Assembly (NCBI RefSeq): GCF_040938485.1
Contig: NW_027271601.1
Span: forward strand, 2,790,001 to 2,854,000
Direction of reading: 5' to 3'
Source of the DNA: Diadema antillarum
Lineage: Eukaryota
DNA length: 64,000 nucleotides
A program made the position numbers and the translations under genes. The notes beneath the pieces are model-generated. The model ran no database searches, was not told where the DNA came from, and was given only the letters and a program-made list of their open reading frames with translations. Of the stretch, positions 1,340 through 64,000 are shown one piece after another (within the stretch, counting starts at the first letter, position 1; each line of letters starts with the position of its first letter).

Positions 1340-3645
1340 CTGTCAAAGAAGATACAGGTAAAGACATTACATCACTATGAGCACACATCACATACAAAAC
1401 AGTCATCTTTGTTCTTCTTCTGATTGCATCAAAGTGAAGTAAAGTTGCTGCATTTGGACTAGAAAGTCCTCCATTTGTGCTCGTACTGAGAATTTCACTT
1501 TAACATGAGAATAACATGCACTGCACTGTCTGCACAATAATGATTTGTTCCTGCATTTGAATGTCACATGCGAATTGAAGAGGTCAGGGATGTACAAAAC
1601 GTAGCTAGAGGAAACGGTATGCTGCTGATGAACTGATCTAAATGCTGGATACAGTAGCTATTGCTCCTTCTTTTCTATGTGATAGTAAGCAAATAATCAA
1701 CGTTGGTGAAGGTGATGGGACACACTATTACTTCTGAGGCGATTTGGATGTACATGTAGCTATCTTTCCGAAGCGCAGCTGAGGAAAGATAGCGTACACA
1801 TTCAGATCGCTGAGGAAGTGATAGTTTGTCTCATTGCCTGAAACTAAAAGTTGATTATTTGCTTTATATTCCACATCTAGGGTCCTAGATATTCCCATTT
1901 TATTCCACACCTGAAACCATTTTAGCTGTCTTACGGTATCCTCAGGGCTTAGGCTACGTAGTTTACTTTAGACGTATGCGCGTAGATGACAAAACAACAA
2001 ATTTGCTCTGCGCCCCGCACGTGGCACCAAAATAAAAGTGCGTACTCAAAATTGTAAGTTATATCATGCGTTAGGACTGTGTGGACTAAGAGATCAGCGA
2101 AACAAAATGACTATTATCACAGAGTGTAACAAACTTTTCTTCTCAGGTGATGTGATGGGCAAAACTACGCTTTATCACGTGATCAGCTCTTGAACAATCC
2201 TACAGCAAGATTCTCAGTATGTGGAATATAACATGACATACATCAAACGAATCGATGGTGTGATCTGAAAGTAGGTGTTGATCAAATATCAAAGAAGAAA
2301 AATATGAAGAAGAAGAAAAGATTCTCAAGATTGTGGCATCACATCACTTTATTTATATAAAGTATGTCACATTATCAGTGTCATTTCATGAGTGTGCACT
2401 GCTAATGGTCTTTGTCTAGTCAATGCATTTCCCATACCACTGCGCAAAAGATTCATAGCATAACTGCGGTGCGTTTGCCAGAAAATCAGAAGGTTGCCCA
2501 ATTTTTTTTTAAAGCAAAGGCTAGTCAAACTCGGTGAGTGTTGCATTATTTGCCCTATAATCTGTGAAGATGGGGCAACTTATAAAATACATGGAATGAA
2601 GAGAGTCTATATTCGTACAGTTGCAATTTACCATTTTAAATAATGATCTTAAAAAAGAAATGATGAAAAAAAATCACTGTCACAGTATACGAACAACTAC
2701 AGAATTCAGATATTATGTATCATATCATAGGCTATTAAATCATATCATCATCAAAGACAACTCATCACCTTATAAATTCTGTCATGGTTTGTCTATGTGC
2801 TGTGTTGAGATGTATTTTGATATCACTTAAAGAGAATTGAACTTCAAAAAAAAAAGAAGTATTACATCAAAGAGCACTTACTGCCTTATCAAAGCACTCT
2901 TTCAAGCCAGAGTGAGTGAGGGAACTTGTTTCTACAAAGGTCAAATTCAGATTCCTTGCAAGCGCCGCTCCCTCATTAAAGGACACAGTCCTATTCTGGT
3001 TTGACGGCGTCCTGAGATCTGCATTGTGTGGCGAAATGAGAGGAAATTTACCTTGAATACCACTGACTAAAACATCAATAGTTGGTGACGGTGAAATAAA
3101 TTACTGCACTGATCATAATTCTGAATATCTCGTATCTGAAAGAAAGAGGTAATACTGGCATGCGGGAAAGAATGACATAATGACATACTGCAACTCCGAT
3201 CAGATACAAACACATCAGCTTGTGAACTTAGGAAGTCACAACAAATCATGTATTAAGGGCATGGCACACATGAACTACATAATAAACCCAATTTCCTGCA
3301 CAATCTGACACTACAGGCTTTGACAGAAAAAAACGAAAATCAAAATGATTTTTTGGACAATTTTTTGTTCCATGCTGAAGGAAGCTTCCTGGGCATTTGC
3401 ACTTTCCTGTCAACATTTGCTACTTTGTACATTAAAATGCAATACCAGTATCGGGAACATTTGACGCACTGTGAAAGTCGGCATACATTGTACATGCATG
3501 TCCTTGGATGAAGATCCAAGGGCCCAGTCCTTGACTAGCTTTGAATATCTTTTCTTCAGTCCTAGTCCTTGACTAGCTCTGAATATCTTTTCTTCAGCCT
3601 TACTCTGCTGATAACTTCACATCCTACATTGAACCCATCACAAAT

Positions 3646-3712
<67 letters not shown>

Positions 3713-4923
3713 ACAAACATAATAGGGCCTACATGTATTGTCCATTCATAGACATAGCAGGTAGTTAACTTCCTTGTCAGTCTTGATAAGCATATCGTCC
3801 CTGCCCTCATTCTACACTGGTCAAACAACTTAGAGAAATTACCTGTTTTCATGGCGACAAGAAGAATGGGAACATTTGGACAAAAGTGCATGACTTCTGG
3901 GTACCACTTTGATGAAATGTTCTCGAATGATGACCGGCTATCCACAGAGTAGCAAATCAAAAAAATGTCAGTCTGAGGATACGACAATGGACGCAGCCGA
4001 TCATAATCCTCCTGCAAGAGTTGAAACAAAATATCTAAAAAGATGAAGTATAAATGTCAAGGTTCTGATGACACCTCCAAGGACCTAACCTTGTGAAGCC
4101 CTCGGAAGAGTACTATGGAGCACATCATGAAAGTAATTACTATTACTATTACACGTACTATTATTATTACTACTATTACTATTACTATCACTGTCAATAT
4201 CATCATATAATTATTAAGAATGACAGCTAGCAAGATAAATGAAAATGGTTATTTGTGTTTGTAAAATGTTATTGGTTGCAATGGTGGGGTGCACTTGGTC
4301 TACAATTTCCCTGTTCAAACAATGTGATGTATAATTTATGAATTTTTATATTCTTTCTTTACAGCTAAGGATATGTCAAAAAGGTATACATATTGTATAA
4401 TGCAAATGTTGCAAACAAGGTATAATTTGATATAAATTCAATAAGCAGAATTATTACAATATCACTCACAGGAAATCTTATGGATCATACAATTATGTAC
4501 AGAGACTTCGCAAGGAATGATGTCAAAATATTTATTTCGACTTTTTGCTTACATTGCTACATGTATTGGACAAAATACTATGTTGTACATCTATTTCTAT
4601 ATCATTCTGAATTCATTGCAGAAAGTGCATTGTACCAAGAAAACATTTCATTCACACTAAAATAACTGTTTCATTTCATACTTCAGTATTGCACCATTAC
4701 ACTCAATGCAGCACAGATGTAATACAACGTATCAACTTACCTGACCTGCTGTGTCCCACAGTGCCAGGCAGCATGGACTGCCATTAAACATTACGTTGGC
4801 AGCATAGTTGTCAAAGACCGTGGGAACATACTCGCTTGGAAAGTTATTTGTGGTGTATGTAATGAGGAGACAACTTTTCCCCACACCACCATCACCAATA
4901 ATGACAAGCTTGATGGTATTCAT
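1222..4923 (-). CDS. RacA/RhoBTB-like Rho-family GTPase, 5' part (4 coding exons, 202 aa; continues beyond exon 4, probably left of the window)
   Basis: Exons 4923-4741, 4011-3843, 3018-2882, 1339-1222 join in frame (phases 0,1,0,1) with GT-AG ends. Motifs [38 protein letters not shown], then basic + Pro-rich [17 protein letters not shown], as recalled for RacA-type RhoBTB proteins. BTB domains not seen in the window. Confidence 0.85.
2882..3018 (-). CDS. Rho GTPase coding exon 3 (DLRTPSN...ECFDKA)
   Basis: Acceptor atgcag, donor GCA|gtaagt; completes G4 (KTD) and carries G5-like ETSSLT. Confidence 0.9.
3524..3599. repeat. Tandem duplication, 38-bp unit x2
   Basis: agtccttgactagct(t/c)tgaatatcttttcttcag repeated. 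Confidence 0.9.
3647..3714. repeat. (CA)n microsatellite
   Basis: Direct reading; source of the spurious HT/CV ORFs. Confidence 0.95.
3843..4011 (-). CDS. Rho GTPase coding exon 2 ([11 protein letters not shown]...LVAMKT)
   Basis: Acceptor ttgcag, donor G|gtaat; 169 nt; Rho switch II sequence. Confidence 0.95.
4741..4923 (-). CDS. Rho GTPase coding exon 1 (MNTIKLV...DTAGQ)
   Basis: ATG at 4923; P-loop and switch I; donor CAG|gtaagt; upstream acceptor ttttccccaatag near 4990 implies a non-coding exon further upstream. Confidence 0.95.
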
Positions 4924-32280: not shown

Positions 32281-35200
32281 GTCATGGCAATAAAGCAGTG
32301 CTGAGCATGGCTTCAAAGTGCAGAGGAATGTTAGACATCCAAATTGTAATGCTTTATACCTAAAACATGTTTTGCACAGATTATGAAGTGCTGCTACTCC
32401 TCCTATGACATCTCCCTGGTGGACAGACTAGCCTATAATACAGGCAGAGGATGCAGCTAAGGTGTTTATTGTCGCGCTAAACATCTGATACGGTGAGACT
32501 ATTGTCTTTGCTATATTATCGACTGTGAATCGTACGAAAAACTGCCACTAATTCCACAACTGCCATTGATTCATGGTCGATGATAAGAAAACAATGAGTA
32601 AAGCAAAACAAGGGGATATGAATGAAGGCAGTAGATGGTTCCACTGTTCATAGTCTCGCTGCATCAGACGAGTCACTTAGCCAAGACATATAATCTCACT
32701 GCATCAGTTAATCGCAACAGCAAAGACAACAGCTGCATCCTTCACCAAGATCATAGGCTATGGACAGATGGGCTATTTGCTCTCCTGCAAGAACAAACCT
32801 TCACAGACTTTTAAAAGCCAAGCAGGGTGGGAATAAAGAAAGTCAACACACCATGTAGTACAATATTTTGTATTTAGTGAATGTTTGGAGTCTGTTACAC
32901 AAGCTGGTGCCAAAGACGGTCACATTTGTACATGGCTGTTCCTACCAATAATGTGCAGACATACTTTTGTTGAATGCATTTTATTCTAACAAAAAACAAA
33001 ACAAAACAAAAACTACATTTACACATGTATAACTACAGCATAGTGTACAAAATGAATAATTCAATAATACCACCAGTATCTCCCTCCCCCCCCCCCCCCC
33101 CCCACACACACAAAGCTTGTGCAGTCTCTAGCAAAAACTGCACAAACATGTGATCATTTGCACCAAAATTCATTAAAATGTCATTTGCTTGGAAGATACA
33201 ACTTACAGTGTTATAGAATTGTCTGTGATCATGCAGTATGTGTAGATGTTCTTTGATGCTACAGACCTGCAGTCATTTGGCTTACTAGCCTTCATGGTCT
33301 GCAGGTGTTAATTGACTAAAATCTCCACAAATCTACAGAGGAATGGACTATTCCTTCACCTACTGCACATATTTCCACAAAGTTTGACAGCATCCATGAA
33401 AATTGAGCATTCCTGTCCATTTCCCCAACACTGACGCGCCTACACACTTAAAGACAATGTGCACTGAAAGATAATTTTGCTCAGAAGTGAAACTGATAAC
33501 AACCTGCCAAGTCAAAGGTTTTGAAACATTTTGGCCAAAATTCACAAAGGTGGTTAAAACTTAGACCATGGTACAAATCTAGACCATGGTCTAAAATAAG
33601 TGCAAAATAGACATACAAATTGTACCTTTAACACATGCACGTATCAATGTGCATTTGCCACTGGTTGTCTGTTGGCATATGCAATAGATCAATCTTATTT
33701 ATGCAGAAGAAATATGCATAAACCATGATTTAAACTTAAACCATCTTTGTGAATTCTGGCCTTGATGTTTGCACACAGCCATCAGGGTATTCAAACCTGT
33801 CTTATCTTATGATTATACTACAAATGCGCAACACATATTACTCATCCAGGCTCCATTCCATTCTTGGTACATTACGGTGTATATATAAACAATCTCACTG
33901 TTTGCCCAAACCAAAGCTCTTCTACATATAGCATGCACACATCCGATACGAAGTTTGTATATCAAAGCTTCCCCTCTGATTTTGAATGCCATGGTCTAGG
34001 TATGTTTAATGCAAGATGACTGTTCATTGATATACAACATGTGTGTACCATTACTTTACATGTGTGAATATTACATTATAGGCCTAATTTGGAATAAAGG
34101 CTTAAAATCTTGTTTCATTAAGTACATGATGGTTCCAATGTCTAGAGGATACTGCATTCTACACACTTTACCTCAGCATTTTTATCTCCAGATGCAGTCC
34201 TATCAACGTGCAAAGCACTGTACTACACCTGTGTCTATGCCCTTTCCTTTCATATGCCACAACTCTTCTACAAACTGCTTTGGTGATTCATCAAACTTAT
34301 ACTGCCTTAATTTTGGCAGGAATTAATCTCATCGCACTAGAAAAAAGAAAAAAAAGAAGAAAACAATGAATAAAATGAAATAAAATAAGATGTAAAAATT
34401 CCCAAGAAATAATTTGGTCAATGACAAATAGCATGCAGTGTGTATATATACCTCATATCCATATATTTGCTTGATATAGAAATGCAATATACAAGAATTA
34501 GTCATAGAATTGTCATAGAATCTCTCTTAGATATATAAAAATTACAACTTTTGTTGTATTCTGATTTTCTTGGGTTATAAAGGGCAGCTACACTGTCACA
34601 AATTCAACAACTTTTTAGTCCACACGCTAACCCTCCCAGACAATATAACAAAAGGAAAGAAAAAAATGGGTACGCTGGAAAGACTGGAAAGACAGAGATG
34701 AAAGTTTTGTATGAGAGTAAAAGAAATTTCAGTAATTTGGGGGTAATACAAGCATGCCACTGACTAGTAACCCGTGATGGTTGGCTGCTTTGGGAGTTGT
34801 ACCACCTATCTGGCCAGGAATGTACATAACATAGCTCATACTGCTCTCACCTATTATTGTGTGAGCAGATATATATCACAGTGATGGTTTGTGTTCTTCA
34901 TTATGCTAATGAAACTAGATCTGAACCAAAGCACTTCATAAGCTTGTCATGCTGCTTTGCCCTTTCCATAGGGAAAGACCATTAAAAAAAAAACAAACAC
35001 AAAACCAAGAACCCAGAACTATCTACAAATATGTGAAAATGTCCCGCAAAATTCCTTCTATATCATGTATTGCAGATGAGGAAGGTACTATGAAATACAC
35101 ACTACAGGACTACGTGTTGAATCCATGTTTGGCATTGTATGCATAAAATAGCAAGTGTAAATCCTTTTGTCTATATAGCATCATCATAACTACATATATT

Positions 35201-35590
35201 TTTTTTCTTTTTGTTTCTTTGCCAAGGCACTTCTGGTCTTAGCTTGCCAGTGATACACACAGGTGCCGACTTGCTTTCTATCTATATACACAACGAAAGG
35301 TTTTCTTACACGACGGATGATAAAAGTCAAGAAACACAGACTGAGTCCATGGAATCTATTTCTAAGGTAAAAAAAAAAAAGCCAACATCCCTCTTTCTCA
35401 AACATCACCCACTCATGTATTCTTACAGATCTCTTTCACATCATCTGGTATGCATAGGTGCTCCTATATATCAAATATATGTCACTATGTTTTGTAACGT
35501 TGATAATTTTTTTGTCCTTCTATTTTTTTTTCTTTGTCCTCAGAGTGCCTTTAAGCCTTTAATTTTTGAGGGGATTTCCCTTCTGTAATA

Positions 35591-35734
35591 TTATTGCTGC
35601 TCCACGTAGTTTGAGGGCAGCATACCGTGCTCGCCCGTACGCGCCACTGTCCCCGTCATCCAACCGGCATCGATGATCTCCCCATCCAGGATCATGTCAC
35701 CTTCGACGAAGGAAACCTCGTCGCTGTCTGCTGC
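35591..35734 (-). CDS. Lasp: Lasp terminal exon: SH3 (SH3-B)
   Basis: [47 protein letters not shown]. Confidence 0.95.
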
Positions 35735-38700
35735 CTATGAAGCGATGGGTTTAAAGACCAAAAGAGGAAAAAGAAATACATGTAGTTTTTAAACAAAGAT
35801 TGCAAAGGCTACCATTTCACTCAATGCATAGCTACGTGTATAGACCGATCCGACCTGGAAGGAAAATCCGCCATTGCTGCAGTATCCCATTCATGTGTGC
35901 ATATGAGAATGCACGATATACATGGTGCCAGGCTCGCACTCGCCATTAAATATATCAGGCATTCAGCATACACGCGCACAGTTGGGACGCTGCAATTAAT
36001 GGTAGGTGTTTTGACAAGTGGGATTGGTCTATATATACACAAATAAGCAAATATGTAGACCTAGAATGATGTTTTTATATTTAAAGGAAAAACTTACATC
36101 AAGCTAATTTTATGTTTTGCATATCAAATAAAATAGTTTTCAGGGTGCTATAAATATGACTACAGCATAAACCTTTACATGTAACTAAATGTGACCCGCC
36201 ACAACAAAAGGATCCGAAAGTCACTGACGGCTCAGCCGAGAAAATTGAGTTGGAAGTCATATCATCAAATTTCTATTGTTGGCATAATGTTGTAGTCTAA
36301 TGTTTCGTCTTTCATCTGCCAAAATTTCGGAGCTAAATGATCAAAGGAAAGGCAAGAAATCAGCATTTTTCTGGGCCACGATTTTCCGATTATCAACGGA
36401 ACACAAACGTGTCTGGATTTTGCACCACAGATAGACTCCGCGCCTAGCAACGAGGGCGTGATCTTATTGATTAGTGCGCTGCATCCTAGTTACTGAATGG
36501 TCATGCGTAGACAACAGACTGCTGGCGCCAAGCTTGAGTAAATATTGTGGAGGTTGATATGAGCGGACCTTCTATTGTCAAGAGGTGAAAACTGTGTTAC
36601 CTCCCCTTGATCACGATTGCATCGGAAAGAAAACTTTGAAGGCGGTTTTCTCAAAACGCTGATTTCCTAGACAACTAAACATGGTCACATAAAATCATCA
36701 ATATCTCCACATCGGAGTACTTTTATGAGTCATGTTTAATAAGAAATTAAAGCGAAAGAGTAAACGAACAATTTCATGTCATTTTCAGAAAATTGACCTC
36801 CCTCAACTTTCGGATCCTTTTGTTGTAGCGGGTCACAAATGATCTATCAAATCTAAAAACTACATGATCTAAAAGTCTAATTGGTCTCAAATTTACTACT
36901 TTGAGGTACAAATTGTCAGCACAAATATATGCCATATATAGTTGTGTGATAATCTCCCTCACTTTCTATCTACGAAAAAAACTACAATTCCTGAGCATTA
37001 AAACAAAAAAGAAATCTAAATGCATTTCAAGCAGAGAGCAGAATGAACAAGGTGAAGGAGGCTGCTTCATGAATCATAAACTACATGTATGCTAACCCCG
37101 TGTTACAATGTAATTACCCCAAGGGTGAAATGCATGTCAACAAATTATATGAACTTGCCACCAATGCAACACAGACAAAAAAAAACACAATGCCTCCAGC
37201 GACACTTTATGGCAGAGGCATAAAAAGAAGAAACAATAACAAACATACAAAGAATCCTCTGTAGGCCTATAGTGACTACAGAAGTGAACTCACCGTATAA
37301 TCATATATGGCAACATAGCGAGGGCCCGTGGCAGGTGGTGGGGCAACAGGGGCAACCTGTGGGGGCGGTGGCTGGTAGCTTTCCTGTGGTGGTGGCTGGT
37401 ACTGAAATATTCATTACCAAGAAAAATATAGGTTTGCTTAAGTCTATATAATATCAAATTTGTTGAATAAAAAAGAATATTACAATTCATTCAAGACTTT
37501 CTAAATTCATTCTATTTTTTTTTTAATCTATTTCATATTTCCCCCTTTTTTGTGTGAGTTTGGAAAGCAAGAAGGTTTTCAGGAAAGCCTGAATAGATAC
37601 TACAGCAAGCAAGTATTCTAGAAAGCTGAACAACCTGGTTTGATGTCATATAGGCATTCCAAACAAGAAATGGTGTGCAGTGGCAGATCCAGCCAAGGGC
37701 GCACCGGGCGCACGCCCCTCTTAATTTTTTGTTAAAACAAAAAAAAAATAAATAAATAGAAATCGGGGGGGGGGGGGGGGGGACATGCGCCCCCCTTTAA
37801 GTTTGTAAAGGCACCCCCATTTTACAGAATTCCTGGATCTGTCCCTGGTATGCATGTAATAGGGCCACAAGTTGTGTGAAACAGCTTTAATGCAAAGGAT
37901 TTTATGTCTGTTTTGTATTTTGTATCCTGTTGTGGGAGGGGTGGGTGATATGGACTTACCCCCTGCGGCTCAGGTGGCTGGAAAGATGGGCGGTCCATTG
38001 GGCGGTCCATTGGGCGGTCCATTTGATATCCCCCTGCTGTATGGCCCTTGTAAGCAATATTGGAGGCCTGCTCACTTACTGGAGGTAATCAAACATACAA
38101 AACATATGTATATACAGACATAAATAAATAAATAAATGAATAGAAATATAATGCTTTGCTAAACCACTCCTAGTATCTATTCAGCTCTGTTTATTACAAT
38201 TCCAGTTTATTACCTGTTTATTACCTGTTTATTCATTTCCTGTTTATCACAATTCCAGCTCCCTTTGTGAATACATCAAATCTGATATACCACACGCTAG
38301 GGAGTGTTCCAGACTGACCCAACCTCAGGAGCAATTACAGTTTGAATATCATAGGGGGTTGAAATTTCATGAAGTGCTTTGTCTAACAAATTTGTTCTCA
38401 GCCAATCAGATGCAAGGATTTCAGTAGCTTAGAACAGTTTGTCAGGAAAAATGTCTGTCAAAACGCTTCATGAAATCCCCCTCCCTCCGGATAGAGTCAT
38501 TAAACATTGTAGATACTGTATATGCTGTTATTTTCGAGAGGGTTTAATTTTCGCAAATTTCGCGAATCACAGTTGGATCGCGAATTTAACAACACGCTAA
38601 TATGTCTCCATGCGCTTTGTTAATAGAGCATTAACGTAAGCGTTGGCGTCGATTCCCGAAAACAACATCTCGCGAAAATGTCTATGACCTCGTCATTCGT

Positions 38701-41700
38701 GAAAATATCTGTACGCGAAAGTAACAGCGTATACAGTATTAACAATTAGAATGAACTTTGACCTCAAATTGACTTGACAGCAAGAGCTTTCAGGAGAAGG
38801 CATGACACCAAACAAACACAAAGTGATGAAATACGTTTAATCAGAACTCTAAACTTACATGTAAGAAGCTCTTTAAAAACTCTTATGAGAGAAAACACAA
38901 GTTATATTCACAAAGATGAAATGATTGTAAATAAATGTTTAAATGAAACAGCCGTGGAGAAGCCGCAAAGAGCATATTCCCTGTAAACTGGCCATATATT
39001 CTTTTGCAGAAATTGATTTATCTCATCATATTTCCATGCATACAAATACTTTTAAAGGGCTTTTTAAAAGTTCAACTGATGAAAACAGAGGAAATTACAG
39101 TAGAAAAAAAAAAGAGAAAAAAAAGAAGAGAGGCTGAAAAAAAGGGCTGTGGGAAAGAGAGATACAATTCCCTACATTAACAGGAAAGCAACAACAATCA
39201 TTGTAAAACACAAACAAAGCAGAGAAGTGTAAAACAAGGAATGTTTGCATGCATTTCAATTTCGCGAACGTCAACATTCGCAAAATTAAAATGCGCACAA
39301 AAGTTCTTGCCTACATAATGTGCACTGGACGCCAGTGACAATCGTGAAAATTTCATGCCGCGAATATATTGTGTTTTAGAGTAAAACTAATGCCTATTGT
39401 AACCCTGAAAAATTAGTGTGTTTTTTTTTTTAAGATGATACTCTCAACATTTGGTTTTCTACAAAGATGATGAAGTCTACTTTTGAAGCAATCTCTTCAA
39501 CCCTTACTGTGCTCTGTATGCCAATGAGTAGATGCTTGTAAACACGACTGCCAACAAATAAAGATTAGCTGATCCAAGTAATCTCAATATAATCCACCCC
39601 ATACATGGATTTTACGCATTATTACAATTACTACATTTTATGTGGATATATGGACACTTGCCGACTTTTCTCAATGGTGACTGATATGTTTTCCTGTTTG
39701 CTATTATTGCCACATACATTCTTCCCAACTTGGAAATACAGAGAAATATATAATATACATGTTTATAAATATATATCTTTATCTGAATACTATAATCAGT
39801 GTCTGACTTTCGTTGTATGAACTTATCATTGTTTTTATATGTACATAAACTGCATTCCCTCTTTCCTTATTTATATGCTGGGCTTTCCATCTATGTTTCT
39901 CTATTATATTTTTTTCTTTCATTCTATCGAAATATTGGGCCAAGTCTGGAAGAATTTACTGAATGCTGAAGAAAAAGCATACCAAGCTTTTACAGTTCCC
40001 AAGCACGTAAAGGGTTAACATGACACGACAACTTAGGCAGCCTTGTACACTTCTCTCACCTTTCCTCAACCGCATACTCTCAGGATCGTCAGCGACTGCA
40101 GTAAACTTCCCCTTACTCTGATTGAACTCTTTGTGGTAGGTGACCTACGAAATTGGAACAGAATGGGACAGAGGAGGAGAAATGAACACCATCAAATGAA
40201 AAGAGTGATTGTAAAATCGGTTAAGAGCCACCTTTAAACATTTTAAAGCGTTGAGTCCAACATCAGATAGAATTAAATATAAATAAAACCACTCCAATTA
40301 TACTTCATTTATTGCATTACAAAGAATATTCCTGAATTATGGATAAAGATATGCCATGTTTTCTATTAAAGGGTACCAAAACCCCGAAAGAAATGTGGAT
40401 TGAAGGAAAGCAGCAACAGTAGTAGAACACATCAGTGAAGGTTTGAGGAAAATCAGACAATCGATGCAAAAGTTATGAGTTTTGGTGTTGGAACTGCTGG
40501 AAGAGGAGACTACTAGAGGTTATGTGTAGACAACAATACAAAGAAAATATAAAGGGAATTCCACATTTCTCTCTGGGTTTTGGTTTCCTTCAAATCAGTT
40601 TATGTGTTTTCTCCCATTTAATTGCCCCTAGTATCTCAAATTTACAAGAATAGAGTTGACTCATTAAGCGATGAAACTCCTCAAATATGTCAGACCTGTC
40701 CTTAACTGACCAACAATCATGCAATATCAAGGATATGGGGCTCAGTCTAATTCTCTTCAGGTAAACAGGTGTCAGTTTACAAGTCTTGGCAGTTAGCACT
40801 TTTTTTCTTCTTCTCCTTCCAGCAGAGGTTTGTGAGTAGTTTCATTCATGCCATTTTGACCTTTGACCTCTAATTGGGGAAAAGCAACAAAACAAAAACC
40901 TCCTCAAAGACCGGATCTTGGTATCTGGAACAAAGACAGGAGGAACCATCGTCTGCTGCTTGAGTTAAACTGAATCAATAGTGGGTCTGTCAATAGTAAT
41001 ACGGGGCAAGCCAACAAGGAACAAGGACCCGACATGCTACAAGAACTCACTTGGCTCTGATTTTGTGACTGCTTCTTGAGGCGCAGGTTCTCAGGAGTGT
41101 CAGCAACGGCTGTAAATTTTGTGGTTGGGTAATGACTGTAGAAGAGGTGGAGGAGGGAGAAAGAATCATCAAAAGTAACTATGATAGTATCATGACTGAC
41201 CATACTCTCTGTGTGGCCTCAACATATTTTGATTTAACTCCAAATCTCTCATCTGCAACATCATTATTTAGGCTACAATGTAATGCAAAATCCACTTAGA
41301 ATATCCTACACGTCAAGTCTAATGCCTCAGTGGCTCAACTCACGCTCACCCTCCTACCAATTATTTTCTCACACCTCCACCCGAATAATAAAGATAAAGG
41401 GAAAAAAGATTACGGCAATGCACGGCGCGCACTTGGCCGGCAAAGAGCAGTGTGGAGAACGGCTTTGCTGCTTTCCACACTGCTCGTGTTCACGCTGGCG
41501 CTCACCGCTGGCTCAGCACACGCTGCTCTGCTCATGTGCATGCGCTCCCTCCCCGTCCCCGCGCTCACATCGGGAAATCAGAAGTGTCACTCTGGAAATT
41601 GAGAAGTCTCACTCCTTGCAGGTCTCACCTTGATGGCTCTGGAATATCCGCTAGAAAAGTCAATGAATCAGGGAATCTTATATAATGACATGCATGTACA

Positions 41701-43035
41701 GTGTATATCATTTACACATGACACAGGTTTAAAGAACACCCAAACCCAAAGACCAATGTGGATTGAGTGAGAGCAGCAACATTAGTAGAACACATCAGTG
41801 AAGTTTGAGGAAAATCGGACAATCGATGAATTTTCAAAGTTTTGGTGTTGGAACTGCGGGATGACGAGACTACTAGAGGTTATGACATATGTGTGGACAA
41901 CAATACAAAGAAAATATAAAGAAAATTCCACAAAAATTCACTTTTCTAGCATAATGAAAGAGCACTTGACTAACCGCTTTCTGAAAGCAGGGGGAATAAT
42001 TGCTACCCCATATGTCAGTATCAGTTGATGGAATGTGTAATTTTCATGAAATATGAATTTTTGTAGAATTCCCTTTTGTATTTTCTATATATTGTAGTCC
42101 ATACATGACACCATAACCTCTAGTAGTCTCCTCATCCAGCGGTTCCAACACCGAAACTTGAAAAATCCATAACGTATTTTGCGTTGACTGTTTGATTTTC
42201 CTCAAACTTTCACTGATATAACATTCTACTAACACTGCTGCTTTCACTCAATCCACATTTCTCTTTGGGTTTGGGTTCCTTTAATTCCTTCAGGTGGACA
42301 AATTTGATACTTGTGTATTCAAAGTGTGTGTTCTGCTTTTGTTTTTATCACCTAAAGAACTTTGATAACTAAAAGTGAGGATTCATACTGCATAAATCCA
42401 GACCTCCAAACTTTTCTAAAAAAGGGATGATTTAGCTGAAAAGTAGGAAAGAACGAGCAGTCCTTTCCTGTGATGTTAATTTTTTATATAGCAGGTGTCA
42501 AGAGTAGAAATGGATAATTTTTGAAAACCACCCCCCCCCCACAAGAAAATAGAAAATGACAATAAGAAAATAGCAATAATTACAATGATGATTATTACGA
42601 TTCTTGCAGGCTGTTTGTACAGCTTGATGGGACAATATGTTTAAAGATTTCTTCACAAATGGCCGATATTAGCAAACTAAATTATCTTGGTAACAAAGGC
42701 CTGATCTCACTGAAGATATTTACAGGTCTGTCACTTTCATCTTATTAGGTTCAATGGGAATGACTTTTTTTCTTTTTCTCTTAATGTAAAGAAAAGATCT
42801 CCTTTTGTGCTATAAACAGACCACGTACTGGGAGTGAGGAAAGAAGAAACAAACAAGGAGTTTAAGAAAAATGAGTAAAAAAAACCCAAAATTTAGTATT
42901 TGCAACTTGCAGTGTACATGTAACAGCATTTACAACTTACGTGTTACAGTAGGGCAACTTGTTGTAACCTTTGTAGTTTTTCATATTAAGCAGCATGGAG
43001 CAGGTTTCACACTTGAAGCATAACTTGTGCCATGT
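35591..43035 (-). CDS. Lasp: LIM and SH3 domain protein (Lasp): LIM C-terminal part, two nebulin repeats, Pro/Gln linker, SH3; first LIM exon not located
   Basis: Exons 43035-42941, 41135-41051, 40144-40060, 38078-37960, 37401-37294, 35734-35591 join in frame. [35 protein letters not shown]; [25 protein letters not shown]; [23 protein letters not shown]; [17 protein letters not shown]...[24 protein letters not shown]. Confidence 0.95.
36191..36836. mobile_element. TIR element with 4-bp TSD AAAT (Sola1-like by TSD; tentative)
   Basis: GTGACCCGCcACAACAAAAGGATCCGAAAGT and its reverse complement at the right end; AAAT on both sides. Confidence 0.8.
37294..37401 (-). CDS. Lasp: Lasp exon: Pro-rich linker + start of SH3
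   Basis: [36 protein letters not shown], donor ACG|gtgagt. Confidence 0.93.
37678..37847. mobile_element. MITE, same family as 9407-9573
   Basis: cagtggcagatcc...ggatctgtccctg; flanks GTGTG/GTATG. Confidence 0.7.
37960..38078 (-). CDS. Lasp: Lasp exon: end of nebulin repeat 2 + linker
   Basis: [18 protein letters not shown](MDRP)x3SFQPPEPQG, donor GGG|gtaagt. Confidence 0.9.
38514..38738. mobile_element. TACTGTA...TACAGTA palindromic MITE (TA target)
   Basis: Terminal inverted repeats; related copies at 25790-25999, 51229-51471, 56022-56234, fragments near 5570-5700, 31215-31390, 39250-39385. Confidence 0.75.
40060..40144 (-). CDS. Lasp: Lasp exon: nebulin repeat 1/2
   Basis: [28 protein letters not shown], donor G|gtgaga. 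Confidence 0.95.
40370..40589. mobile_element. Internally deleted K1-related element
   Basis: Left TTAA|agggtacc; homologous to the left arm of 41733-42280 fused to a short right end. Confidence 0.65.
41051..41135 (-). CDS. Lasp: Lasp exon: end of LIM + nebulin repeat 1
   Basis: [28 protein letters not shown], donor CAA|gtgagt. Confidence 0.95.
41733..42280. mobile_element. Family K1-related element (Lasp intron)
   Basis: TTAA on both sides; shares agtagaacacatcagtgaa...tttgaggaaaat with K1. Confidence 0.8.
42941..43035 (-). CDS. Lasp: Lasp exon: LIM domain second part
   Basis: Acceptor ttttctttctgacag, donor AC|gtaagt. Confidence 0.95.
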
Positions 43036-43383
43036 CTGTCAGAAAGAAAAAAAGGAGAATTATGACAGCAACGAAAATTATAAACACAACAACAACAATA
43101 ATAATTTAATAATAATAATCACAACAATCATAAAAAATAGCAAGAGAATATTATTAATTTTATCATCATCATCATCATCATCATGATCACAGTTGATAAC
43201 ATTAACTCTCACAATTTGATTTATATCACTCACACAAACACAAATGAGCAATATTTCTTGGTGTGTAACATAATAATCTGTAAAAAACATATGTATATCC
43301 TACACAAACATCACCTATAAATTGGTTGTGAACTCCCTGCCTGAATGGGGGCTGATAATTGCCATTTGACTAAGATAGCATCC

Positions 43384-43554
43384 CTGGGGAGTGTTTCATA
43401 AAGCTGTTCTTAAAGTTACGAACCACTTAAGAATGACTGGTGATCAGTTCTTGTGCTGAATTATTGAAATTCTGATAAGTATAGCCCATCAGAATGTGTT
43501 CCAGTCATTAAGTCATTTGTAACTTTAAGAACAGCTATGTGAAACACCCCCCTG
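43384..43554. mobile_element. Tourist/Harbinger-like MITE
   Basis: ggggagtgtttcataaagctgttcttaaagttac...gtaactttaagaacagctatgtgaaacacccc. Confidence 0.7.
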
Positions 43555-43818
43555 GTCCTGTTTTGGCACTACTCAAGTTTTAGTACTGTACAAGAGACCA
43601 CAGCAACCACTACATATCCAATTAATGGCATTTCCATGACTCAACCAACTGCAACATAATTCTAACAGGAACATATAGATATTTCTTCCTCCTTTTGTTT
43701 ATTGGTCTAAACATTTTTTTCTTCATGTCTGAAGTAAACTAATTCCACTCATGGTAGCCATGATATTCTTTTTTAATGCCAAACTGTGACTGATTTTTGT
43801 TGTAAAGTGCTGTGAAAC

Positions 43819-45240
43819 CAGTCATTGACGGCTTATCTCGAAAGGGTGCGGCGCGGAGTGGAGCACTCAACGCACCCGTTCGAGACAAGCCCCCCCGTTT
43901 GTCTCAAAAGGGTGCGTTGAGCGGAGTATGTTCGATGAACGTACCCATTCGAGACAACGGGGGGGGGGGGGGGGGGGGGGGAGGGGGAGGCTAGTCCCGA
44001 ATGCATGGGTAAGCTAGTCTTGGAGGCCAGCCTTTTTGTGACATCGTATTCATCCACCACTTTTCCATTTTGTATTTACTGTTATTATTTTTTTAACATT
44101 ATTTATTTATTCTCTGGAAAATGTGCATTTGACGTGGCTTAAAAGCCAATTGTTTGGCGGGATGCTTTTACATAATACTTTTAGAGAGGTCTCGTGGCAA
44201 ATTGGGAAATCTTGACAGCACGCGTTTCTTCAATGAAAGGATTCATAATTTCACAAGCTACCTCACATCTGATCACCAGCGGCATCAATCCATGTTTTGG
44301 ATTGGGGGGGGGGGGGGGCTGCAAAAGTTGAAAAAATGTATTTCATGTAAATTTTAGTGGTATGTAGCATTTTTGAAACATATTTTTGCATTGCATTTTA
44401 TGAATTTTTAAGTTGCCAAATTTATTGGGCAAAACAATACTTCTACCCCCCACTGCCCCCCCCCCCAATCGACGCCTCTGCTGCTCACTCATTCTTACAT
44501 ATTTTTAGAGGCAATAATAGACACCATGACCACAACGAGTCTTAACACCGTTGACCACACCGCCAAATATATTGTTTTATATTGTTTGTTTTGGTACTTT
44601 TTTTTTTTTTGGGGGGGGGGGGGAATATAAACAAATACAACACAATTTCATAAGTGATTCAGCAAATTACACGGGGCGTTTGTCCCCTCCGTGTAGATCC
44701 CATGACAGACATAAATTTGCATAAATTAACGTAATTAATTAAAAATTCTGTGTAGATCTTTGCTAGCTCCTACAATGTCCTATCAGACAAAACAAATAGA
44801 ATGAAAATCCACTGTAAAATGTCTTGAGAAGAAGCATTTTCATGTTTTTGGAGAAATGTTCATAAGGCCTAATAAATTTCAGAATTATGAGTTAAGTTTG
44901 GTAGCTCCCAGCAAGCCCTATCAGATAAACAATCAGAATCAATTAGAAGTAGCATTTGTGCGTGTGTGTGTGTGTTTGAAGAAATTGCCACACACATGTC
45001 TGCGTATGGAGCCTGTTTCATATAGTCCCCTCGCGAACTATGACAGGGACAAAAAGGTCTGGCCACTAAGACTAGCTTACGCGTACATTCGAGCCCCCCC
45101 ATTGTCTCGAATGGGTGCGTTCATCGAACATACTCCACCCAATGCACCCTTTCGAGACAAACAGGGGGGCTTGTCTCGAACAGGTGCGTTGAGCGCTCCA
45201 CTCCGCGCCGCACCCTTCCGAGATAAGCCGTCGTTGACTG
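43819..45240. mobile_element. Long-TIR (about 200 bp) non-autonomous element with a nested MITE at 44277-44480
   Basis: About 43819-44040 is the reverse complement of about 45045-45240; repeated TTCGAGACAA/TTGTCTCGAA motifs; no clear TSD. Confidence 0.75.
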
Positions 45241-46039
45241 TGTAAGAGCGCTATATAAACGATCCGATTGCATTGTATTGTATCGTATGATATCTCATAC
45301 ATCATAAACAGGTGTTACGTTCACACACCAAGCATACGACACCTAGGCCCATGAATTCACACTTAATTACACAAACTCTACGCATCATTTAAAGTAAACA
45401 CTAACGTACAACACAACAAACAGCCATGCACATACATATGCAAAGATGGACCCAGACAGTTATAAGGCATGAGACCAAACACCCAAGTACAACTGTACAC
45501 ATAGTTTACAACTGGGTAGAAATGTGCTTTATTTGTGTTTCTACAATACATGATTCTTACAGCAATTTCTTGTTTCCATCACTGGATGGACACGAAATGG
45601 TGATATTAAAATAGAGACGGTACATAGTATACGTAAACTAAACAGCTATATATCATTTGATATGTTGTGTACCTCAGGAAAGCTTGAAAGGCATTATTTT
45701 CTTCTTTTTATACTTTGTAATATATATGATTTTCTCACTAAGGCAAGATATCTGGGGTTTTTTAATATGTGAATGCTATTTCTACTGGGGAAAATGAAAA
45801 AGTAATGTAAGATATACCACTCATAACTAATGCTTGCATTGACCGCATATCAACAATCTGGATGCTTCTTTATCCACTCTGGTTTAAATCATGTGCATTC
45901 GGTGACCTTCTCCTTTTCATGCAATCTTCCGCTGAATGTGTGTATGTCACGGGAGAGGATGGTTACAGAACTGATGATTCAACTCAACAAACGTGTCGAC
46001 ACATTTTTCATAACGGATACACGATTGGGTATGTTACAT

Positions 46040-46216
46040 CAGGGGCAGATCCAGGAATTCCGTAAAGGGGAGGCGCCTTTACAAAATTAAAGGGGAGTGC
46101 ACACGCCCCCTCCCCCATTTTTTTCTTTTTATTTCTTCTGTTCTAACAAAAAAAAAAGAAAAAGAAAAAAAGAGAGGGGCGCATGCCCGTTGAGCCCCCC
46201 TCTGGATCCACCATTG
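46040..46216. mobile_element. MITE, same family as 9407-9573
   Basis: caggggcagatcc...ggatccaccattg; flanks TACAT/TACAC. Confidence 0.7.
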
Positions 46217-46842
46217 TACACAAACGCCCTATAGAGCACAAGACATCACAGCAGTACATGCAACGTAAGAGCTTGATAGATACATATCATACATACATGG
46301 TACCTTGTCATCTGACAAAGACAGTCCAAATCAACAAAAAATAGGGCAATCTCTGATTCTGAAGAGGAGTAAAGGGTTTGGGCAGTTTCTAAACCCTCAC
46401 TTCCTTAAGTCTAACTGAAATATGAAATGTAGACAGGTGAGCCAGCACTGGTTGAGTTGTGTTTTTGAGGACCAGTTTCATCTCTGTCTACCTGTACTCT
46501 CAATCTGGTGTCTGTAAATGTTCCTGCCATTCCAACCTTAGCTTCACAGGAGATACTCATATTCTAAGACTATCCATACAACATACTCTTGAGAGACGTG
46601 ATTCATATACAGTACATCAATTTCTTGTCACAACTCTAATTTGTCTGTTCATTTCTGTTCAAATTGATTTCACATAAGAAACTGGTGCTTGTATCCAAGA
46701 AGTGCAGGGAGGTGTTTTGCAAAAATAATCATCAGGGCAGTTTTCATTCTTCTTCTTTAATATGCAAGTTTAGTAATTTCACACACACATACATAGGCAG
46801 ACAAAATTAGATCAGCAACCGATACCTTTTTCTAATGCAAAC

Positions 46843-46988
46843 CAGGGGGGTGTTTCATCAGCATTTGTCAGCGCTGACAACTTTAATCACCATAGTAACA
46901 GTTAGTGACCAGAGCATCTCAGCCAATCAAAACCAAGGATTTTGCTGAAATTGTTGGCACTGACAAACGTTGATGAAACACCCCCCTG
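46843..46988. mobile_element. Tourist/Harbinger-like MITE (GGGGTGTTTCAT TIR)
   Basis: ggggtgtttcatca...tgatgaaacacccc; relatives at about 43384-43554 and 38352-38481. Confidence 0.7.
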
Positions 46989-48872
46989 ATTGGTACTTCC
47001 AATCTTTTGTTGTTGCTGTTGTTGTTATTGTGTGTGTGTGTTATTGTGTTGGACAGAGGAAATGACAAGTTAAGATCTGCTTCACATGAAGATATGACCT
47101 TAGCCACAACTTGTCCCAATACAACCTTTATAACAATACTTTGAAAGCACAAACAAACAAGACAATTACATTAAAATTGAAGAAAATATTTTCACTGTGG
47201 GTATTCCATAAATTGTGCAAAAGACATCAAATATTTGCAATTGACATCACATATTCAAAATTGCTTATATCAACCAAATATCATAAAAAGAAGCTGTAGT
47301 GTCCGCACACACGTGGAAGCAGTGATAATGGTAAGACAGTGATAACTTTAAAAAGTTCAGCCTTCATTGTTCTTCCTCACTCTGTATTACAAGATTTAGT
47401 CTCCAAATTCATCCTCAATAGGCTCCACTAGCAACTTCAAGAGATCTGCTAATTCATGCTCAGTGGTATCATGGACTTTAACACTAAGGATTCTGAAGAA
47501 TTGCATCAAAGCATGGCAACAGCCAAGATGGCTATTCAAGAAGGATTCAGCAGTACTTCAGTGCATATAACAAAACCCTGACATACCTACAGCCTAACGC
47601 AGATGCCTATTTCGAACACTGGGATACCCTGTGTCACAAACATTTTATTATCACAAACACAAAAACACAACGTGTTGTGTCCTTATGCAAGGAACAGCAC
47701 AAGAAGAAAGGTATGATATTGACCATTTTAAAAGATCGTGTTCTACTCCTCTCTACCCACGGCTAATGGAAAAATCACTTGCTGAACTTGTTATCAATTG
47801 TCATGGAAATTATCAGGTATTTGTTGAGGTCAAAAGCACAAAACAAGCCTGTACAATCCAAGTTCATGAGACATATGAGAAAGTACAAAATATTGAACAC
47901 AGGCTCGCCCGTACTTGTCATATCCAGTATCAAGTTGCATAATAGCAATCCTAACATATCATTAAACATGTATTTCAAAAAATAAAACTGAAAAAATCAC
48001 CCTAGTGACATGTAGATAGTTTTAGCAATATTTCTGGTTGAGACATTTTGATTCTCAATGTTCAGACACCTTCATTGAAACTGATGTGAGGCCACACAGG
48101 GACAAGTTTAATCTTCTACACATGCCTGCATTGGCAGTGGGCTACGACAACAATAGTGTAATGACTGAGATATAAAAAGTGGCATATTATACAACATGAC
48201 AAATTAGACCTCTGTTTCTTCTTTCAATTTCCTGGCAAGACGGACAAAAAACAAAAAGAATCACAAGTATCACATCAAAAAAGTATGCTGAGTTGTTACA
48301 TCTACAATGAGCTGTTCATGCCACTTTGGAACTGACGCTCCAAAATAATGTGTGTTGTATGAAGACTCATTTGTTCATTCTTCATTTATGCATGTCTGTG
48401 CATAAATAGTGCCATAACGACTTCTTTTTTTTTTACATGGGAAGTTTCCTTTGTTCCTGGCAATATATAAATACAATTTTTTAAAACACACCACATGAAG
48501 GAAAAAAAAATAGGATAATACACATTTCATACCATTGCTTTTCATGACCACCTAGTGTCATAATCAGACCAGATTTCCTTCATACTGTTTTTTGGAACGA
48601 TTAATGCTGCCAACGAGGCCTACCATGATGTAGTTTGGGAAGCCAATGTATCACATGCACTAGGCCATTCGCATCAGGGACTTGCATCGTATACATCCCC
48701 AAAAGAGTAAGAAACAAAAAGAAGCAGATTCAATTGAATTGATTCATTGACAATGTATGTTGGACCAGGAGCCACCATTCACAGAGTGTCTTCTTTTCAA
48801 AGCTTCAATATATCTAATGCCGATGCAGTAAAATAAAAAAACGTTGTGGGTCGTCTAACGCTATGAAGTCGT

Positions 48873-49109
48873 CTATACGAGCTCGACGTAGTTCGAGGGT
48901 AGCATTCCTGTCTGCCCAGTCCTCTCCACGGTTCCCGTCATCCAGCCCTCGTCGATGTGCTGCCAGTTGACGACCAAGTCGCCCTCCTTAAATGAGACCT
49001 CGTCGCTGTCTGCGGCGTTGTAGTCGTACATGGCGCGGTACTTCTGCTGCCTGCCGCCCCCATAGTTCTGAGGAGGAGCCTGCTGTGGGGGCGGAGCCGG
49101 TTGCCTCTG
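48873..49109 (-). CDS. Terminal exon encoding a second nebulin/Lasp-type SH3 domain (SH3-A)
   Basis: Acceptor catttgacag; [78 protein letters not shown]; strongly GC3-biased codons. Confidence 0.93.
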
Positions 49110-49542
49110 CTGTCAAATGAAAACAAGAAATATGCAACTACTCAGAGAAAGCTATCTTCAAAGTCAAGCGCAGTCATACATTTAACTTGTGTGCAAATCT
49201 GTGAAGGGGATCTCTAATACCCTTCATCAAAAGGAAAGAAAAGATGGCAGATGAAATTGGTCAGCAAAAGCATGTTAATATACAACTCAAGCTGAAATTT
49301 TTTCTTAATTCTGTATCTGTTGCAGTCACAATTCCCAAGAGAAATATTTTCAGTTTCAAATCAGCATGCCATATGAGATGTATTTCTAATTCTAGTCCAT
49401 GGCAACATACTGGTAATCATAAAAAAACCACTTTTACCACTCTAGAACAAAACCAAAACAAGTCTTCACTATAATTTCAGTATCAATCAACTATCACTCT
49501 AAATTACTACAGCACATGGTATTAAAGCTTTCACATCTTTAA

Positions 49543-49927
49543 AGGGACTGTACAGTGCTGGTTGAGGTGGGGATTCATGTTGTAAACATTCCTAAGTGAG
49601 ATAATGAGACACCTCTTATGAAATATAAAAGAGTATGTAATTTCAAGTAGGATTCAACATTTATTTGATGAAAATTGGTTTTCAAATGGCTGAGATATCC
49701 AAAAAAAGTGATAGAAATAAAAGGCAACAGGCCACGCCTTTTATTAGGATTTCTTTGTTTCACTTTGTTTTTGGATATCTCAGCCATTTCAAAACCAATT
49801 TTCATCAAATAAACTTTTGATACACCTTAGAATTGCATGCTCTTTGACATCTCATAGAGTGGCTTCTGAATATCTTGCAAAACATTAAAAGCTAAATCCT
49901 CACCTCGACAAGAACTGTACACACCCT
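49543..49927. mobile_element. Family K2 copy
   Basis: TTAA|AGGGACTGTACAG...CTGTACACACCCT|TTAA; internal identity with 13590-13971. Confidence 0.8.
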
Positions 49928-50204
49928 TTAAGCTGTTTAGAGATTAACATCAAGTATAAAAGATAAGTAACTATGTACTTTTAGTCTTTTTGAATAAAGT
50001 GGGCAAATACAAGTGTTAAGCATAAAGTGCTCCCAGGAAAAGGGGGGGGGGTATCTTTAATTCTGTCACCTGTTTGATTCTACAGCCTTTCCAATCATAC
50101 AATACACATGGCAAACAAAGCACACACATGTATATCTTTACAAGATCATTTCCCTACACCTCTTTTTTTTCCCCTTATTTTTGTTCTCTTAAATAATCAC
50201 TTAC

Positions 50205-50260
50205 CATCTGAGGATCAAATAGTGATCCTACAGCTTGTCTGGGCTGGTTGCCAGAGTAGG
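50205..50260 (-). CDS. Linker exon upstream of SH3-A (YSGNQPRQAVGSLFDPQM)
   Basis: Pyrimidine-rich acceptor ...caataacag, donor ATG|gtaagt; phase 0 end fits the SH3-A exon; GSLFD resembles the GSIFD linker motif of Lasp/nebulette. Confidence 0.75.
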
Positions 50261-62945: not shown

Positions 62946-64000
62946 CTGCACGTTAATCACGTACTGCACTAATCTCTTTAAAGTCTAGCATTTGAATTTC
63001 ATTCAAACACTTGGAAAACTGGTTGCACTTTTGAAGGAAAAAAAAAGAAGAAGAAGGAAGAACCAGTCATGTTGCTTAAGAAGCTCAGTCTAGAAATCAT
63101 AATTGCGCTATCAATGGACACTACAAAACTCAGTATTTGATCCCATACTGATTGTTTTTCTTCAAAATTTGGCCAATGTTGGCCATGATACACTAGTGTG
63201 GCAGATCTTTGTACTGAAAGGTATCACGCTAATTCCCCCTATTGACTGCATTACACATGGTCATTTCACAAGGATCAACCAGTACTAATGTATGTAGGCC
63301 CCTATATTATGATGCCAAAGTTGAATGGGCAATTTACAGTATACTCCCCCTGATGTCCACCAACTACCATAGTCACCCCCCCCCCCCCAATACCTGAAAG
63401 TGATTTACATCAAACACATCGAAAACACTTCATATCTACTTCATATCTGACTACCAATACAGATGAAGTTTGATGAAACGTTGCATATCTCTATGAGATT
63501 TACTGGTCTCACATATCACTTTAAACCACTCAGCATGCCAATGGACCGAGCTGAAATTTCATCTTTTTCCAATAAAATGTAAATTTGTTTGTGCAGTAGT
63601 AATGCTCCACAGTATAGGGTTAAGGAGCAAATCAAAATCCAATTTACTTGTACCATCAATAGCCTTACATTCCAAGCCAATATGGTGATACATAAATAAA
63701 CCCACGTAATTTGTAAAGTGCATACCACCCTCATACATCGATTATTTGATTGATACAGACTTTAACTTGTGTGCAAGTTAATACATAAAATGTGCTCTGA
63801 GGTCAATGACTTGGTAAACCTGACAGTGACCTGTAAATGGTTTGTTTCTATGCAGTATTCCAGGTTTAGTATAATACATCTTTGCACTGAGCTGTGTCTA
63901 GGACCTAGGTAATACACATGGTCTGAGTACTGACCAGAAAATATTTTCCAGAGAAATAACTATCTCCCTCCATGCTTTAAAAACATATTTCCAGTCCAAA

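Follow-up and report, generated by a model that had tools for sequence, protein, structure and literature searches.

At the cholinergic locus, VAChT is nested in the first intron of ChAT, and the two genes share 5′ exons. For the Lasp family, reviews describe one ancestral gene in invertebrates (PMC2359764, PMC3305314) and assign the split into LASP1 and LASP2 to the lineage leading to vertebrates (PMC2359764). Nematostella is reported to have three LASP genes in tandem (PMC3305314), and alternative 5′ and 3′ exon sets of the NEBL locus give nebulette and LASP2, proteins that differ in their LIM, nebulin and SH3 parts (PMC3305314, PMC2359764). Here we analyze a 64,000-nucleotide stretch of the genome of the sea urchin Diadema antillarum (positions 2790001–2854000 of contig NW_027271601.1, here C713), which we call the window and which is best read as the 3′ two-thirds of a compound Lasp locus transcribed on the minus strand. 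The locus comprises two alternative gene bodies, A and B, that probably share two distant first exons, E1a and E1b. The first half of the LIM zinc finger is apparently drawn from this shared two-exon pool for two nebulin–SH3 bodies.

The Diadema locus resembles the cholinergic locus in that an inner gene lies within the first intron of an outer gene, both transcribed in one direction and apparently drawing on a common 5′ exon and promoter zone. On a second haplotype contig (haplotig) of D. antillarum the order is E1a, E1b, A and B, and in Diadema setosum the A gene lies within the B gene, both on the plus strand. The shared exons of the cholinergic locus are non-coding and its genes are unrelated, whereas in Diadema the exon that would be shared encodes half a zinc finger and the inner and outer genes are paralogues. 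Likewise, NEBL isoforms share one SH3 exon, whereas the Diadema bodies each have their own SH3 domain and would share the start of the LIM domain instead. As in Nematostella, the Lasp paralogues are adjacent on one strand, but the Nematostella duplicates are reported to be complete, whereas in Diadema the downstream copy lacks its own first exon, and E1a and E1b both precede the two bodies. Set against the family as reviewed, Diadema has two old, coexisting paralogues that do not appear to be separate transcription units, a pair that questions the textbook statement of one invertebrate Lasp gene. We found no published description of this sea urchin arrangement in the literature; the arrangement is already modeled by automatic annotation in D. 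setosum, and its kind is known from the cholinergic locus.

Two Lasp gene bodies in the window

The window has no N stretches. Its Lasp features, in the order of transcription, are as follows.

50261–64000, minus strand: distal part of the large intron of gene A, between exon 4 and the linker exon, without a coding exon of the RefSeq A isoforms examined
50205–50260, minus strand: gene A linker exon, 56 nt, starting in phase 1 and encoding (A/P)YSGNQPRQAVGSLFDPQM, with an AG acceptor and a GTAAGT donor
48873–49109, minus strand: gene A terminal exon, a proline/glutamine-rich linker and complete SH3 domain, coding from 49109 to 48876, with the stop at 48875–48873
47644–48872, minus strand: probable 3′ untranslated region of gene A, with ATTAAA at 48112–48107 and AATAAA at 47649–47644, from a hexamer scan only
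43036–47643, minus strand: spacer from the A 3′ end to exon 2B, which would be the 3′-terminal portion of intron 1 (~52 kb) in the E1a–B unit
42941–43035, minus strand: gene B exon 2, second half of the LIM domain, with a ctgacag acceptor in phase 0 and a gtaagt donor after 2 nt of a codon
41051–41135, minus strand: gene B exon 3, end of the LIM domain (last His ligand) and nebulin repeat 1, with a PF00880 match, flanked by cag and gtgagt
40060–40144, minus strand: gene B exon 4, nebulin repeat 2, with the donor G/gtgaaa, its boundary set by the D. setosum protein P0318 (…RLRK/VSEQ…)
37960–38078, minus strand: gene B exon 5, linker, with a gtaagt donor
37294–37401, minus strand: gene B exon 6, proline-rich linker and first SH3 strand (RYVAIYDYT)
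35591–35734, minus strand: gene B exon 7, remainder of the SH3 domain with the stop at 35593–35591, matching Pfam SH3_1 positions 8–48 (2.5e-07)

Body A consists of exons 2–4, a 17-nt microexon encoding GFSFT, a ~33-kb intron, the linker exon and the SH3 terminal exon with its own stop. Exons 1–4 and the microexon are located outside the window, on the primary contig C848 and on the haplotig C1308, with the microexon within the large intron (C1308:419653–419669; C848 about 604790–604804). Within the window, the A proteins P0388 and P0383 map only to 50260–50205 and 49109–48873. The linker peptide YSGNQPRQAVGSLFDPQM is found in D. antillarum RefSeq isoforms X1–X3 and X5, and the VGSLF motif of this exon is common to the linker exon of the sea cucumber Lasp. 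Translation of the terminal exon gives the C-terminus of P0388, P0391 and P0383 exactly and matches Pfam SH3_1 (5.9e-15) and SH3_9 (6.1e-16). The acceptor of this exon is a NAGNAG site (cag/cag/ag; 49112/49109/49106), and isoforms X2 and X3 differ by one glutamine, missing in X3, as such an acceptor predicts. Isoforms X1 and X5 reach 244 residues because they include the GFSFT microexon. In Lytechinus pictus, a GFSFT exon followed by RKFGMKKKF forms the end of a 158-residue isoform without an SH3 domain. Candidate poly(A) hexamers lie 0.8 and 1.2 kb 3′ of the SH3-A exon.

Body B comprises exons 2–7, joined by canonical, in-phase junctions; the two haplotypes and D. setosum alike have all six exons open and bounded by canonical splice sites. 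The full-length B protein is represented here by P0318 of D. setosum, and the window exons were searched singly. Exon 2B covers positions 21–51 of the Pfam LIM profile (5.7e-06) and contains internal Met codons. Together, exons 2B and 3B retain the zinc ligands H, C, C, C, C and H, with the first CxxC supplied from outside the window (E1a/E1b). P0318 matches Pfam LIM over residues 5–58 (1.7e-11) and PF00880 on two stretches, as does the A protein P0388 (LIM residues 5–58, 2.2e-11), and residues 145–181 of P0318, corresponding to exon 6, match the D. setosum locus at 100%. Both proteins have the Lasp build, in which a LIM domain starting at residue 5 precedes two nebulin repeats and a linker rich in proline, with an SH3 domain at the C-terminus.

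Coordinates, splice sites and Pfam matches agree with the preliminary description of this DNA, which had placed a linker exon and an SH3 terminal exon (50260–48873) upstream of the exon encoding the second half of the LIM domain at 43035 on the minus strand. The nebulin repeats that it had put after the LIM exon are found in the exons starting at 41135 and 40144, and alignment of the two SH3 domains plus flanking residues reproduces its count of 38 identities in 55 positions. Its second SH3 domain, at 35734–35591, is correctly located but is not complete: the exon holds only SH3_1 positions 8–48, and the first strand is encoded at 37401–37294. The B domain is therefore interrupted by an intron that is lacking in A, whose SH3 domain is encoded on a single exon.

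First exons beyond the window

Residues 1–23 of a Lasp protein, which form the first zinc-finger half of the LIM domain, are encoded by either E1a or E1b, and both exons end in phase 0. Exon 2B starts in phase 0, and both first exons are phase-compatible with both second exons, 2A and 2B. The phase-0 split between exons 1 and 2, at CLDK/xWHK, is common to the Lasp genes of Diadema, Saccoglossus, Lingula and the sea cucumber. The position of the first exons is apparent on C1308, a second copy of the region that is 96.5–98.4% identical and contiguous through the entire locus, where E1a, E1b, E2A, E3A, E4A, SH3-A, E2B, E3B and SH3-B follow one another on one strand. Along the direction of transcription, E1a is followed after ~8.6 kb by E1b (peptide MNKRCPRCQKTVYPVEELKCLDK), after a further 1.4 kb by body A and, beyond a 5.8-kb spacer, by body B. 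On this contig, E1a and E1b lie ~52 kb and ~43 kb upstream of exon 2B, past the ends of both the window and its contig; the E1a donor is at C1308:438313.

Both first exons are also present on C848, at 585021–585089 and 593344–593412. The primary contigs C713, which ends 9.3 kb beyond the window at 2863322, and C848, which ends at 616046, meet within the large intron of gene A, so that the locus is split in two; no exon 1 can be found on the window contig because the primary assembly cuts the locus in this intron. The D. antillarum assembly holds 1,754,659,819 bases in 2,963 contigs, about twice the 886-Mb genome of D. setosum, which fits the retention of unpurged haplotigs. With the locus divided over two primary contigs and B lacking a nearby start exon, gene callers can miss B or call a fragment.

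The preliminary description had reported no first LIM exon in 43036–64000, and the searches bear this out as far as the contig end. A CxxC pattern scan of the window found no LIM exon 1, and a tblastn search of 43036–73322 (the contig end) with 12 Lasp N-termini returned chance fragments only, with a best E value of 0.038, whereas the same 12 N-termini match E1a and E1b on C1308 at E values of 1e-9 to 1e-23. This makes it extremely improbable that A and B are ordinary tandem paralogues, each with its own LIM exon 1, and that the exon of B was overlooked; the conventional first exon between 43036 and about 48000 that such a layout was expected to contain was not found by tblastn. D. setosum has the same exon order and shows the same gap, likewise with no exon 1 between A and B. 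Between the two Diadema species, the spacer and introns are 82–90% identical throughout, and because introns and spacer are so alike, conservation is unable to pick out hidden exons in this comparison.

First-exon pairings in Diadema and Lytechinus

The pairings of first exons with the A and B bodies in D. antillarum, D. setosum and L. pictus are those of annotation models. In D. antillarum, the RefSeq proteins XP_071477615–620 are identical in sequence to exon translations at this locus; isoforms X1–X3 join E1b to A, and X5 joins E1a to A. In D. setosum, XP_072173654 joins E1b to A, and XP_072173655 joins E1a to B. The D. setosum locus (L017, plus strand) accommodates this pairing in a B gene of 73.7 kb (10001–83724) that encloses the A gene (20070–61855). 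L. pictus has the same two kinds of start on A, with an E1b-type first exon in X3 and an E1a-type first exon in X4. In addition, the Logan contig SRR3402056_29851 (1371 nt) carries an E1a-type start (22 of 23 residues identical) on a B-type body. It is likely a spliced message because its 246-codon open reading frame is uninterrupted, and the tree places its protein (P0300) as sister to D. setosum B (98/94 support).

These pairings favor one of the options raised in the preliminary description, namely two alternative 3′ cassettes that share a distant first exon, as E1a is joined to A in D. antillarum and to B in D. setosum. Its option of an SH3 module nested in Lasp intron 1 captures the nesting but understates the extent, for the whole A gene lies inside intron 1 of the E1a–B unit. 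In D. antillarum itself, an E1a–B junction is most likely, judging from the D. setosum model, selection and exon phases.

Like E1a, E1b has a phase-0 end, precedes B and falls within the CpG-rich zone, and the annotation of E1a with both bodies indicates that promiscuity exists. B might then be fed mainly from E1b, or from E1a and E1b equally, and the locus would be a two-by-two combinatorial unit. An E1b–B protein was not seen in any species searched, however, and the B-type bodies found elsewhere bear E1a-type starts; we regard this version as decidedly unlikely.

Selection on gene B

Substitution counts identify A and B as old paralogues, both under purifying selection. The proportion of synonymous differences between them (pS) is 0.86, which is saturated, while the nonsynonymous proportion (pN) is 0.20, and this combination points to an old duplication with constraint on both copies ever since. 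For the B exons, comparison of D. antillarum with D. setosum gives a synonymous divergence (dS) of 0.17 and a nonsynonymous divergence (dN) of 0.020, a ratio of 0.12. Exons 2B–4B contain seven synonymous and no nonsynonymous differences between the two species, with no amino-acid change in exon 2B. A half LIM finger so well kept requires its partner half, for which E1a and E1b are the only possible sources.

Exon 5B is the most variable between the two species, with six nonsynonymous differences and an indel in its MDRP repeat. In the window, at about 37975–38020 (minus strand), this repeat has three copies of a 12-nt unit, against one SDRP in D. setosum; it is an in-frame expansion in the least constrained exon.

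The lack of an exon 1 beside B, together with the absence of a D. antillarum B protein from the protein collection, is what might be expected if B were a 5′-truncated, silent duplicate, a pseudogene in waiting. We looked for loss of frame, loss of splice sites and neutral evolution in B and found none of these signs; the introns are kept, the frames are open and dN/dS is 0.12. The six open exons and their canonical splice sites recur in both haplotypes and in D. setosum, and, given synonymous saturation between A and B, a dead copy of that age would be unrecognizable. A silent B is therefore very improbable. More generally, purifying selection, the retained LIM zinc ligands and a spacer without a promoter-like CpG zone argue against the suggestion in the preliminary description that the downstream unit is a 5′-truncated or re-promotered duplicate.

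A probable shared promoter zone and proposed alternative routes to A and B

The ratio of observed to expected CpG (o/e) served as an indirect guide to promoters. The only zone with an o/e of ~1 is a 10-kb block at C848:584001–594000 that holds both E1a and E1b, against a median background of 0.39. On the haplotig the block spans about 58500–71500, counted from C1308:371001. It probably serves as the promoter zone of the locus and is probably unmethylated. Elsewhere the locus, the spacer included, is CpG-depleted (o/e 0.2–0.7); within the spacer, the ratio is 0.30–0.69, compared with about 1.0 over the E1a–E1b zone, and no promoter-like CpG zone is present.

This distribution bears on whether B is independent, that is, whether it is driven from an unrecognized promoter of its own within the 5.8-kb spacer, begins there with a non-LIM or non-coding exon and encodes a protein without a complete LIM domain. 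Such a product would begin inside or before exon 2, in the way that nebulette relates to LASP2. The internal Met codons of exon 2B would suit it, as would the A poly(A) site that lies between the shared exons and B and the missing D. antillarum B-type protein. Set against these points, the zinc ligands in exons 2B and 3B are kept and exon 2B is unchanged in amino-acid sequence between the two Diadema species, although a half finger without a partner needs no upkeep; the spacer has no CpG-rich promoter-like zone; and the D. setosum model and the Logan contig P0300 both have an E1a-type start on a B-type body. An independent B thus appears unlikely.

We therefore retain shared first exons as the probable explanation, and they suggest the following scheme. 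Transcription would start in the CpG-rich E1a/E1b zone. Transcripts starting at E1a, and perhaps at E1b, would take one of two routes. In one, the first exon would be spliced to exon 2A, and the transcript would end at the A poly(A) site. In the other, the polymerase would read through A, and E1a would be joined to exon 2B with removal of a 51.8-kb intron containing the whole of A; the shared first exon would then complete the LIM domain of the resulting B protein. The choice of body would amount to a competition between 3′ splice sites, coupled to use of the poly(A) site, and the two bodies are mutually exclusive because the SH3-A exon is terminal and has no donor.

Several observations weigh against this scheme. 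The E1a–B junction rests on a Gnomon model in the sister species D. setosum, and CpG o/e is only an indirect proxy for a promoter. A search of the protein collection with the D. setosum B protein found no B-type protein of D. antillarum, in which B may be unannotated or weakly expressed, and a search with the same protein found no B orthologue in camarodont urchins. A splice of ~52 kb over a functional poly(A) site is demanding, and a comparison of the intronic sequences after E1a and E1b with those before exons 2A and 2B found only chance complementary matches of 10–14 nt.

If it operates as proposed, the sharing of first exons would permit up to four proteins from one promoter zone, and the choice of paralogue would be tied to read-through of the A poly(A) site. 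The locus would then be a compact natural system for long-range splice choice and for the fate of tandem duplicates.

Age of the A–B pair

A single ordinary Lasp gene, with exons 1 and 2 close together, is present in each of Saccoglossus, Lingula and the sea cucumber Apostichopus. The sea cucumber gene and A both have compact exons 1–4, a large intron (~34 kb in the sea cucumber) and a VGSLF linker exon, and this shared layout makes A the structural counterpart of the usual ambulacrarian Lasp gene. A and B are not sisters in the maximum-likelihood trees; when all columns are used, a clade with 98/99 support unites A with the Lasps of protostomes, Saccoglossus and the sea cucumber and excludes B. 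Forcing A and B to be sisters costs 43 log-likelihood units with all columns (approximately unbiased test, p 0.0036), a result under the influence of alternatively spliced linker exons. With core domains only and exon 1 removed, the cost is 19 units (p 0.019), and the backbone of the core-domain tree collapses. The group was named after the tree had been seen and the backbone is weak, so these analyses give only a hint that the A–B split predates sea urchins.

A bolder and, in our view, doubtful reading is that A and B are relics of a much older tandem Lasp pair, rather than of a duplication within sea urchins, coupled by a shared LIM first exon. One member could be of a long type, with a third half-repeat, an E..RRP helix and a VGS(I/L)xDYDP linker motif, and the other of a short, LASP1-like type. 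Most protostome Lasps share these three long-type features, as does vertebrate LASP2. If true, this would mean that the LASP1/LASP2-type split predates vertebrates, contrary to the reviews, and that the shared-exon locus is the ancestral state from which separate genes are derived.

Neighboring genes and minor features

In Saccoglossus (L015:1–4508) and Lingula (L016:132–3912), Lasp and a ribosomal protein L14/RPL23-type gene are arranged head to head, and RPL23 also neighbors LASP1 in human. The upstream neighbor in the sea cucumber is a PSMD3-like gene. RPL23 microsynteny was considered as a guide to the ancestral first exon and was of no help because the RPL23-like matches of Diadema lie on contigs other than those of the Lasp locus.

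No tandem repeats were found in window positions 35000–51000. Upstream of the A linker exon, a 162-codon open reading frame at 52978–53466 (minus strand) has no Pfam match, lies outside every RefSeq A isoform examined and overlaps a stretch flagged as a transposon-borne exon (52499–53086). At the other end of the window, 3′ of Lasp B and on the same strand, a 154-codon open reading frame at 3562–4026 (minus strand) matches the Pfam Ras family (6.4e-13, profile positions 58–114) and probably represents one exon of a gene for a small GTPase.

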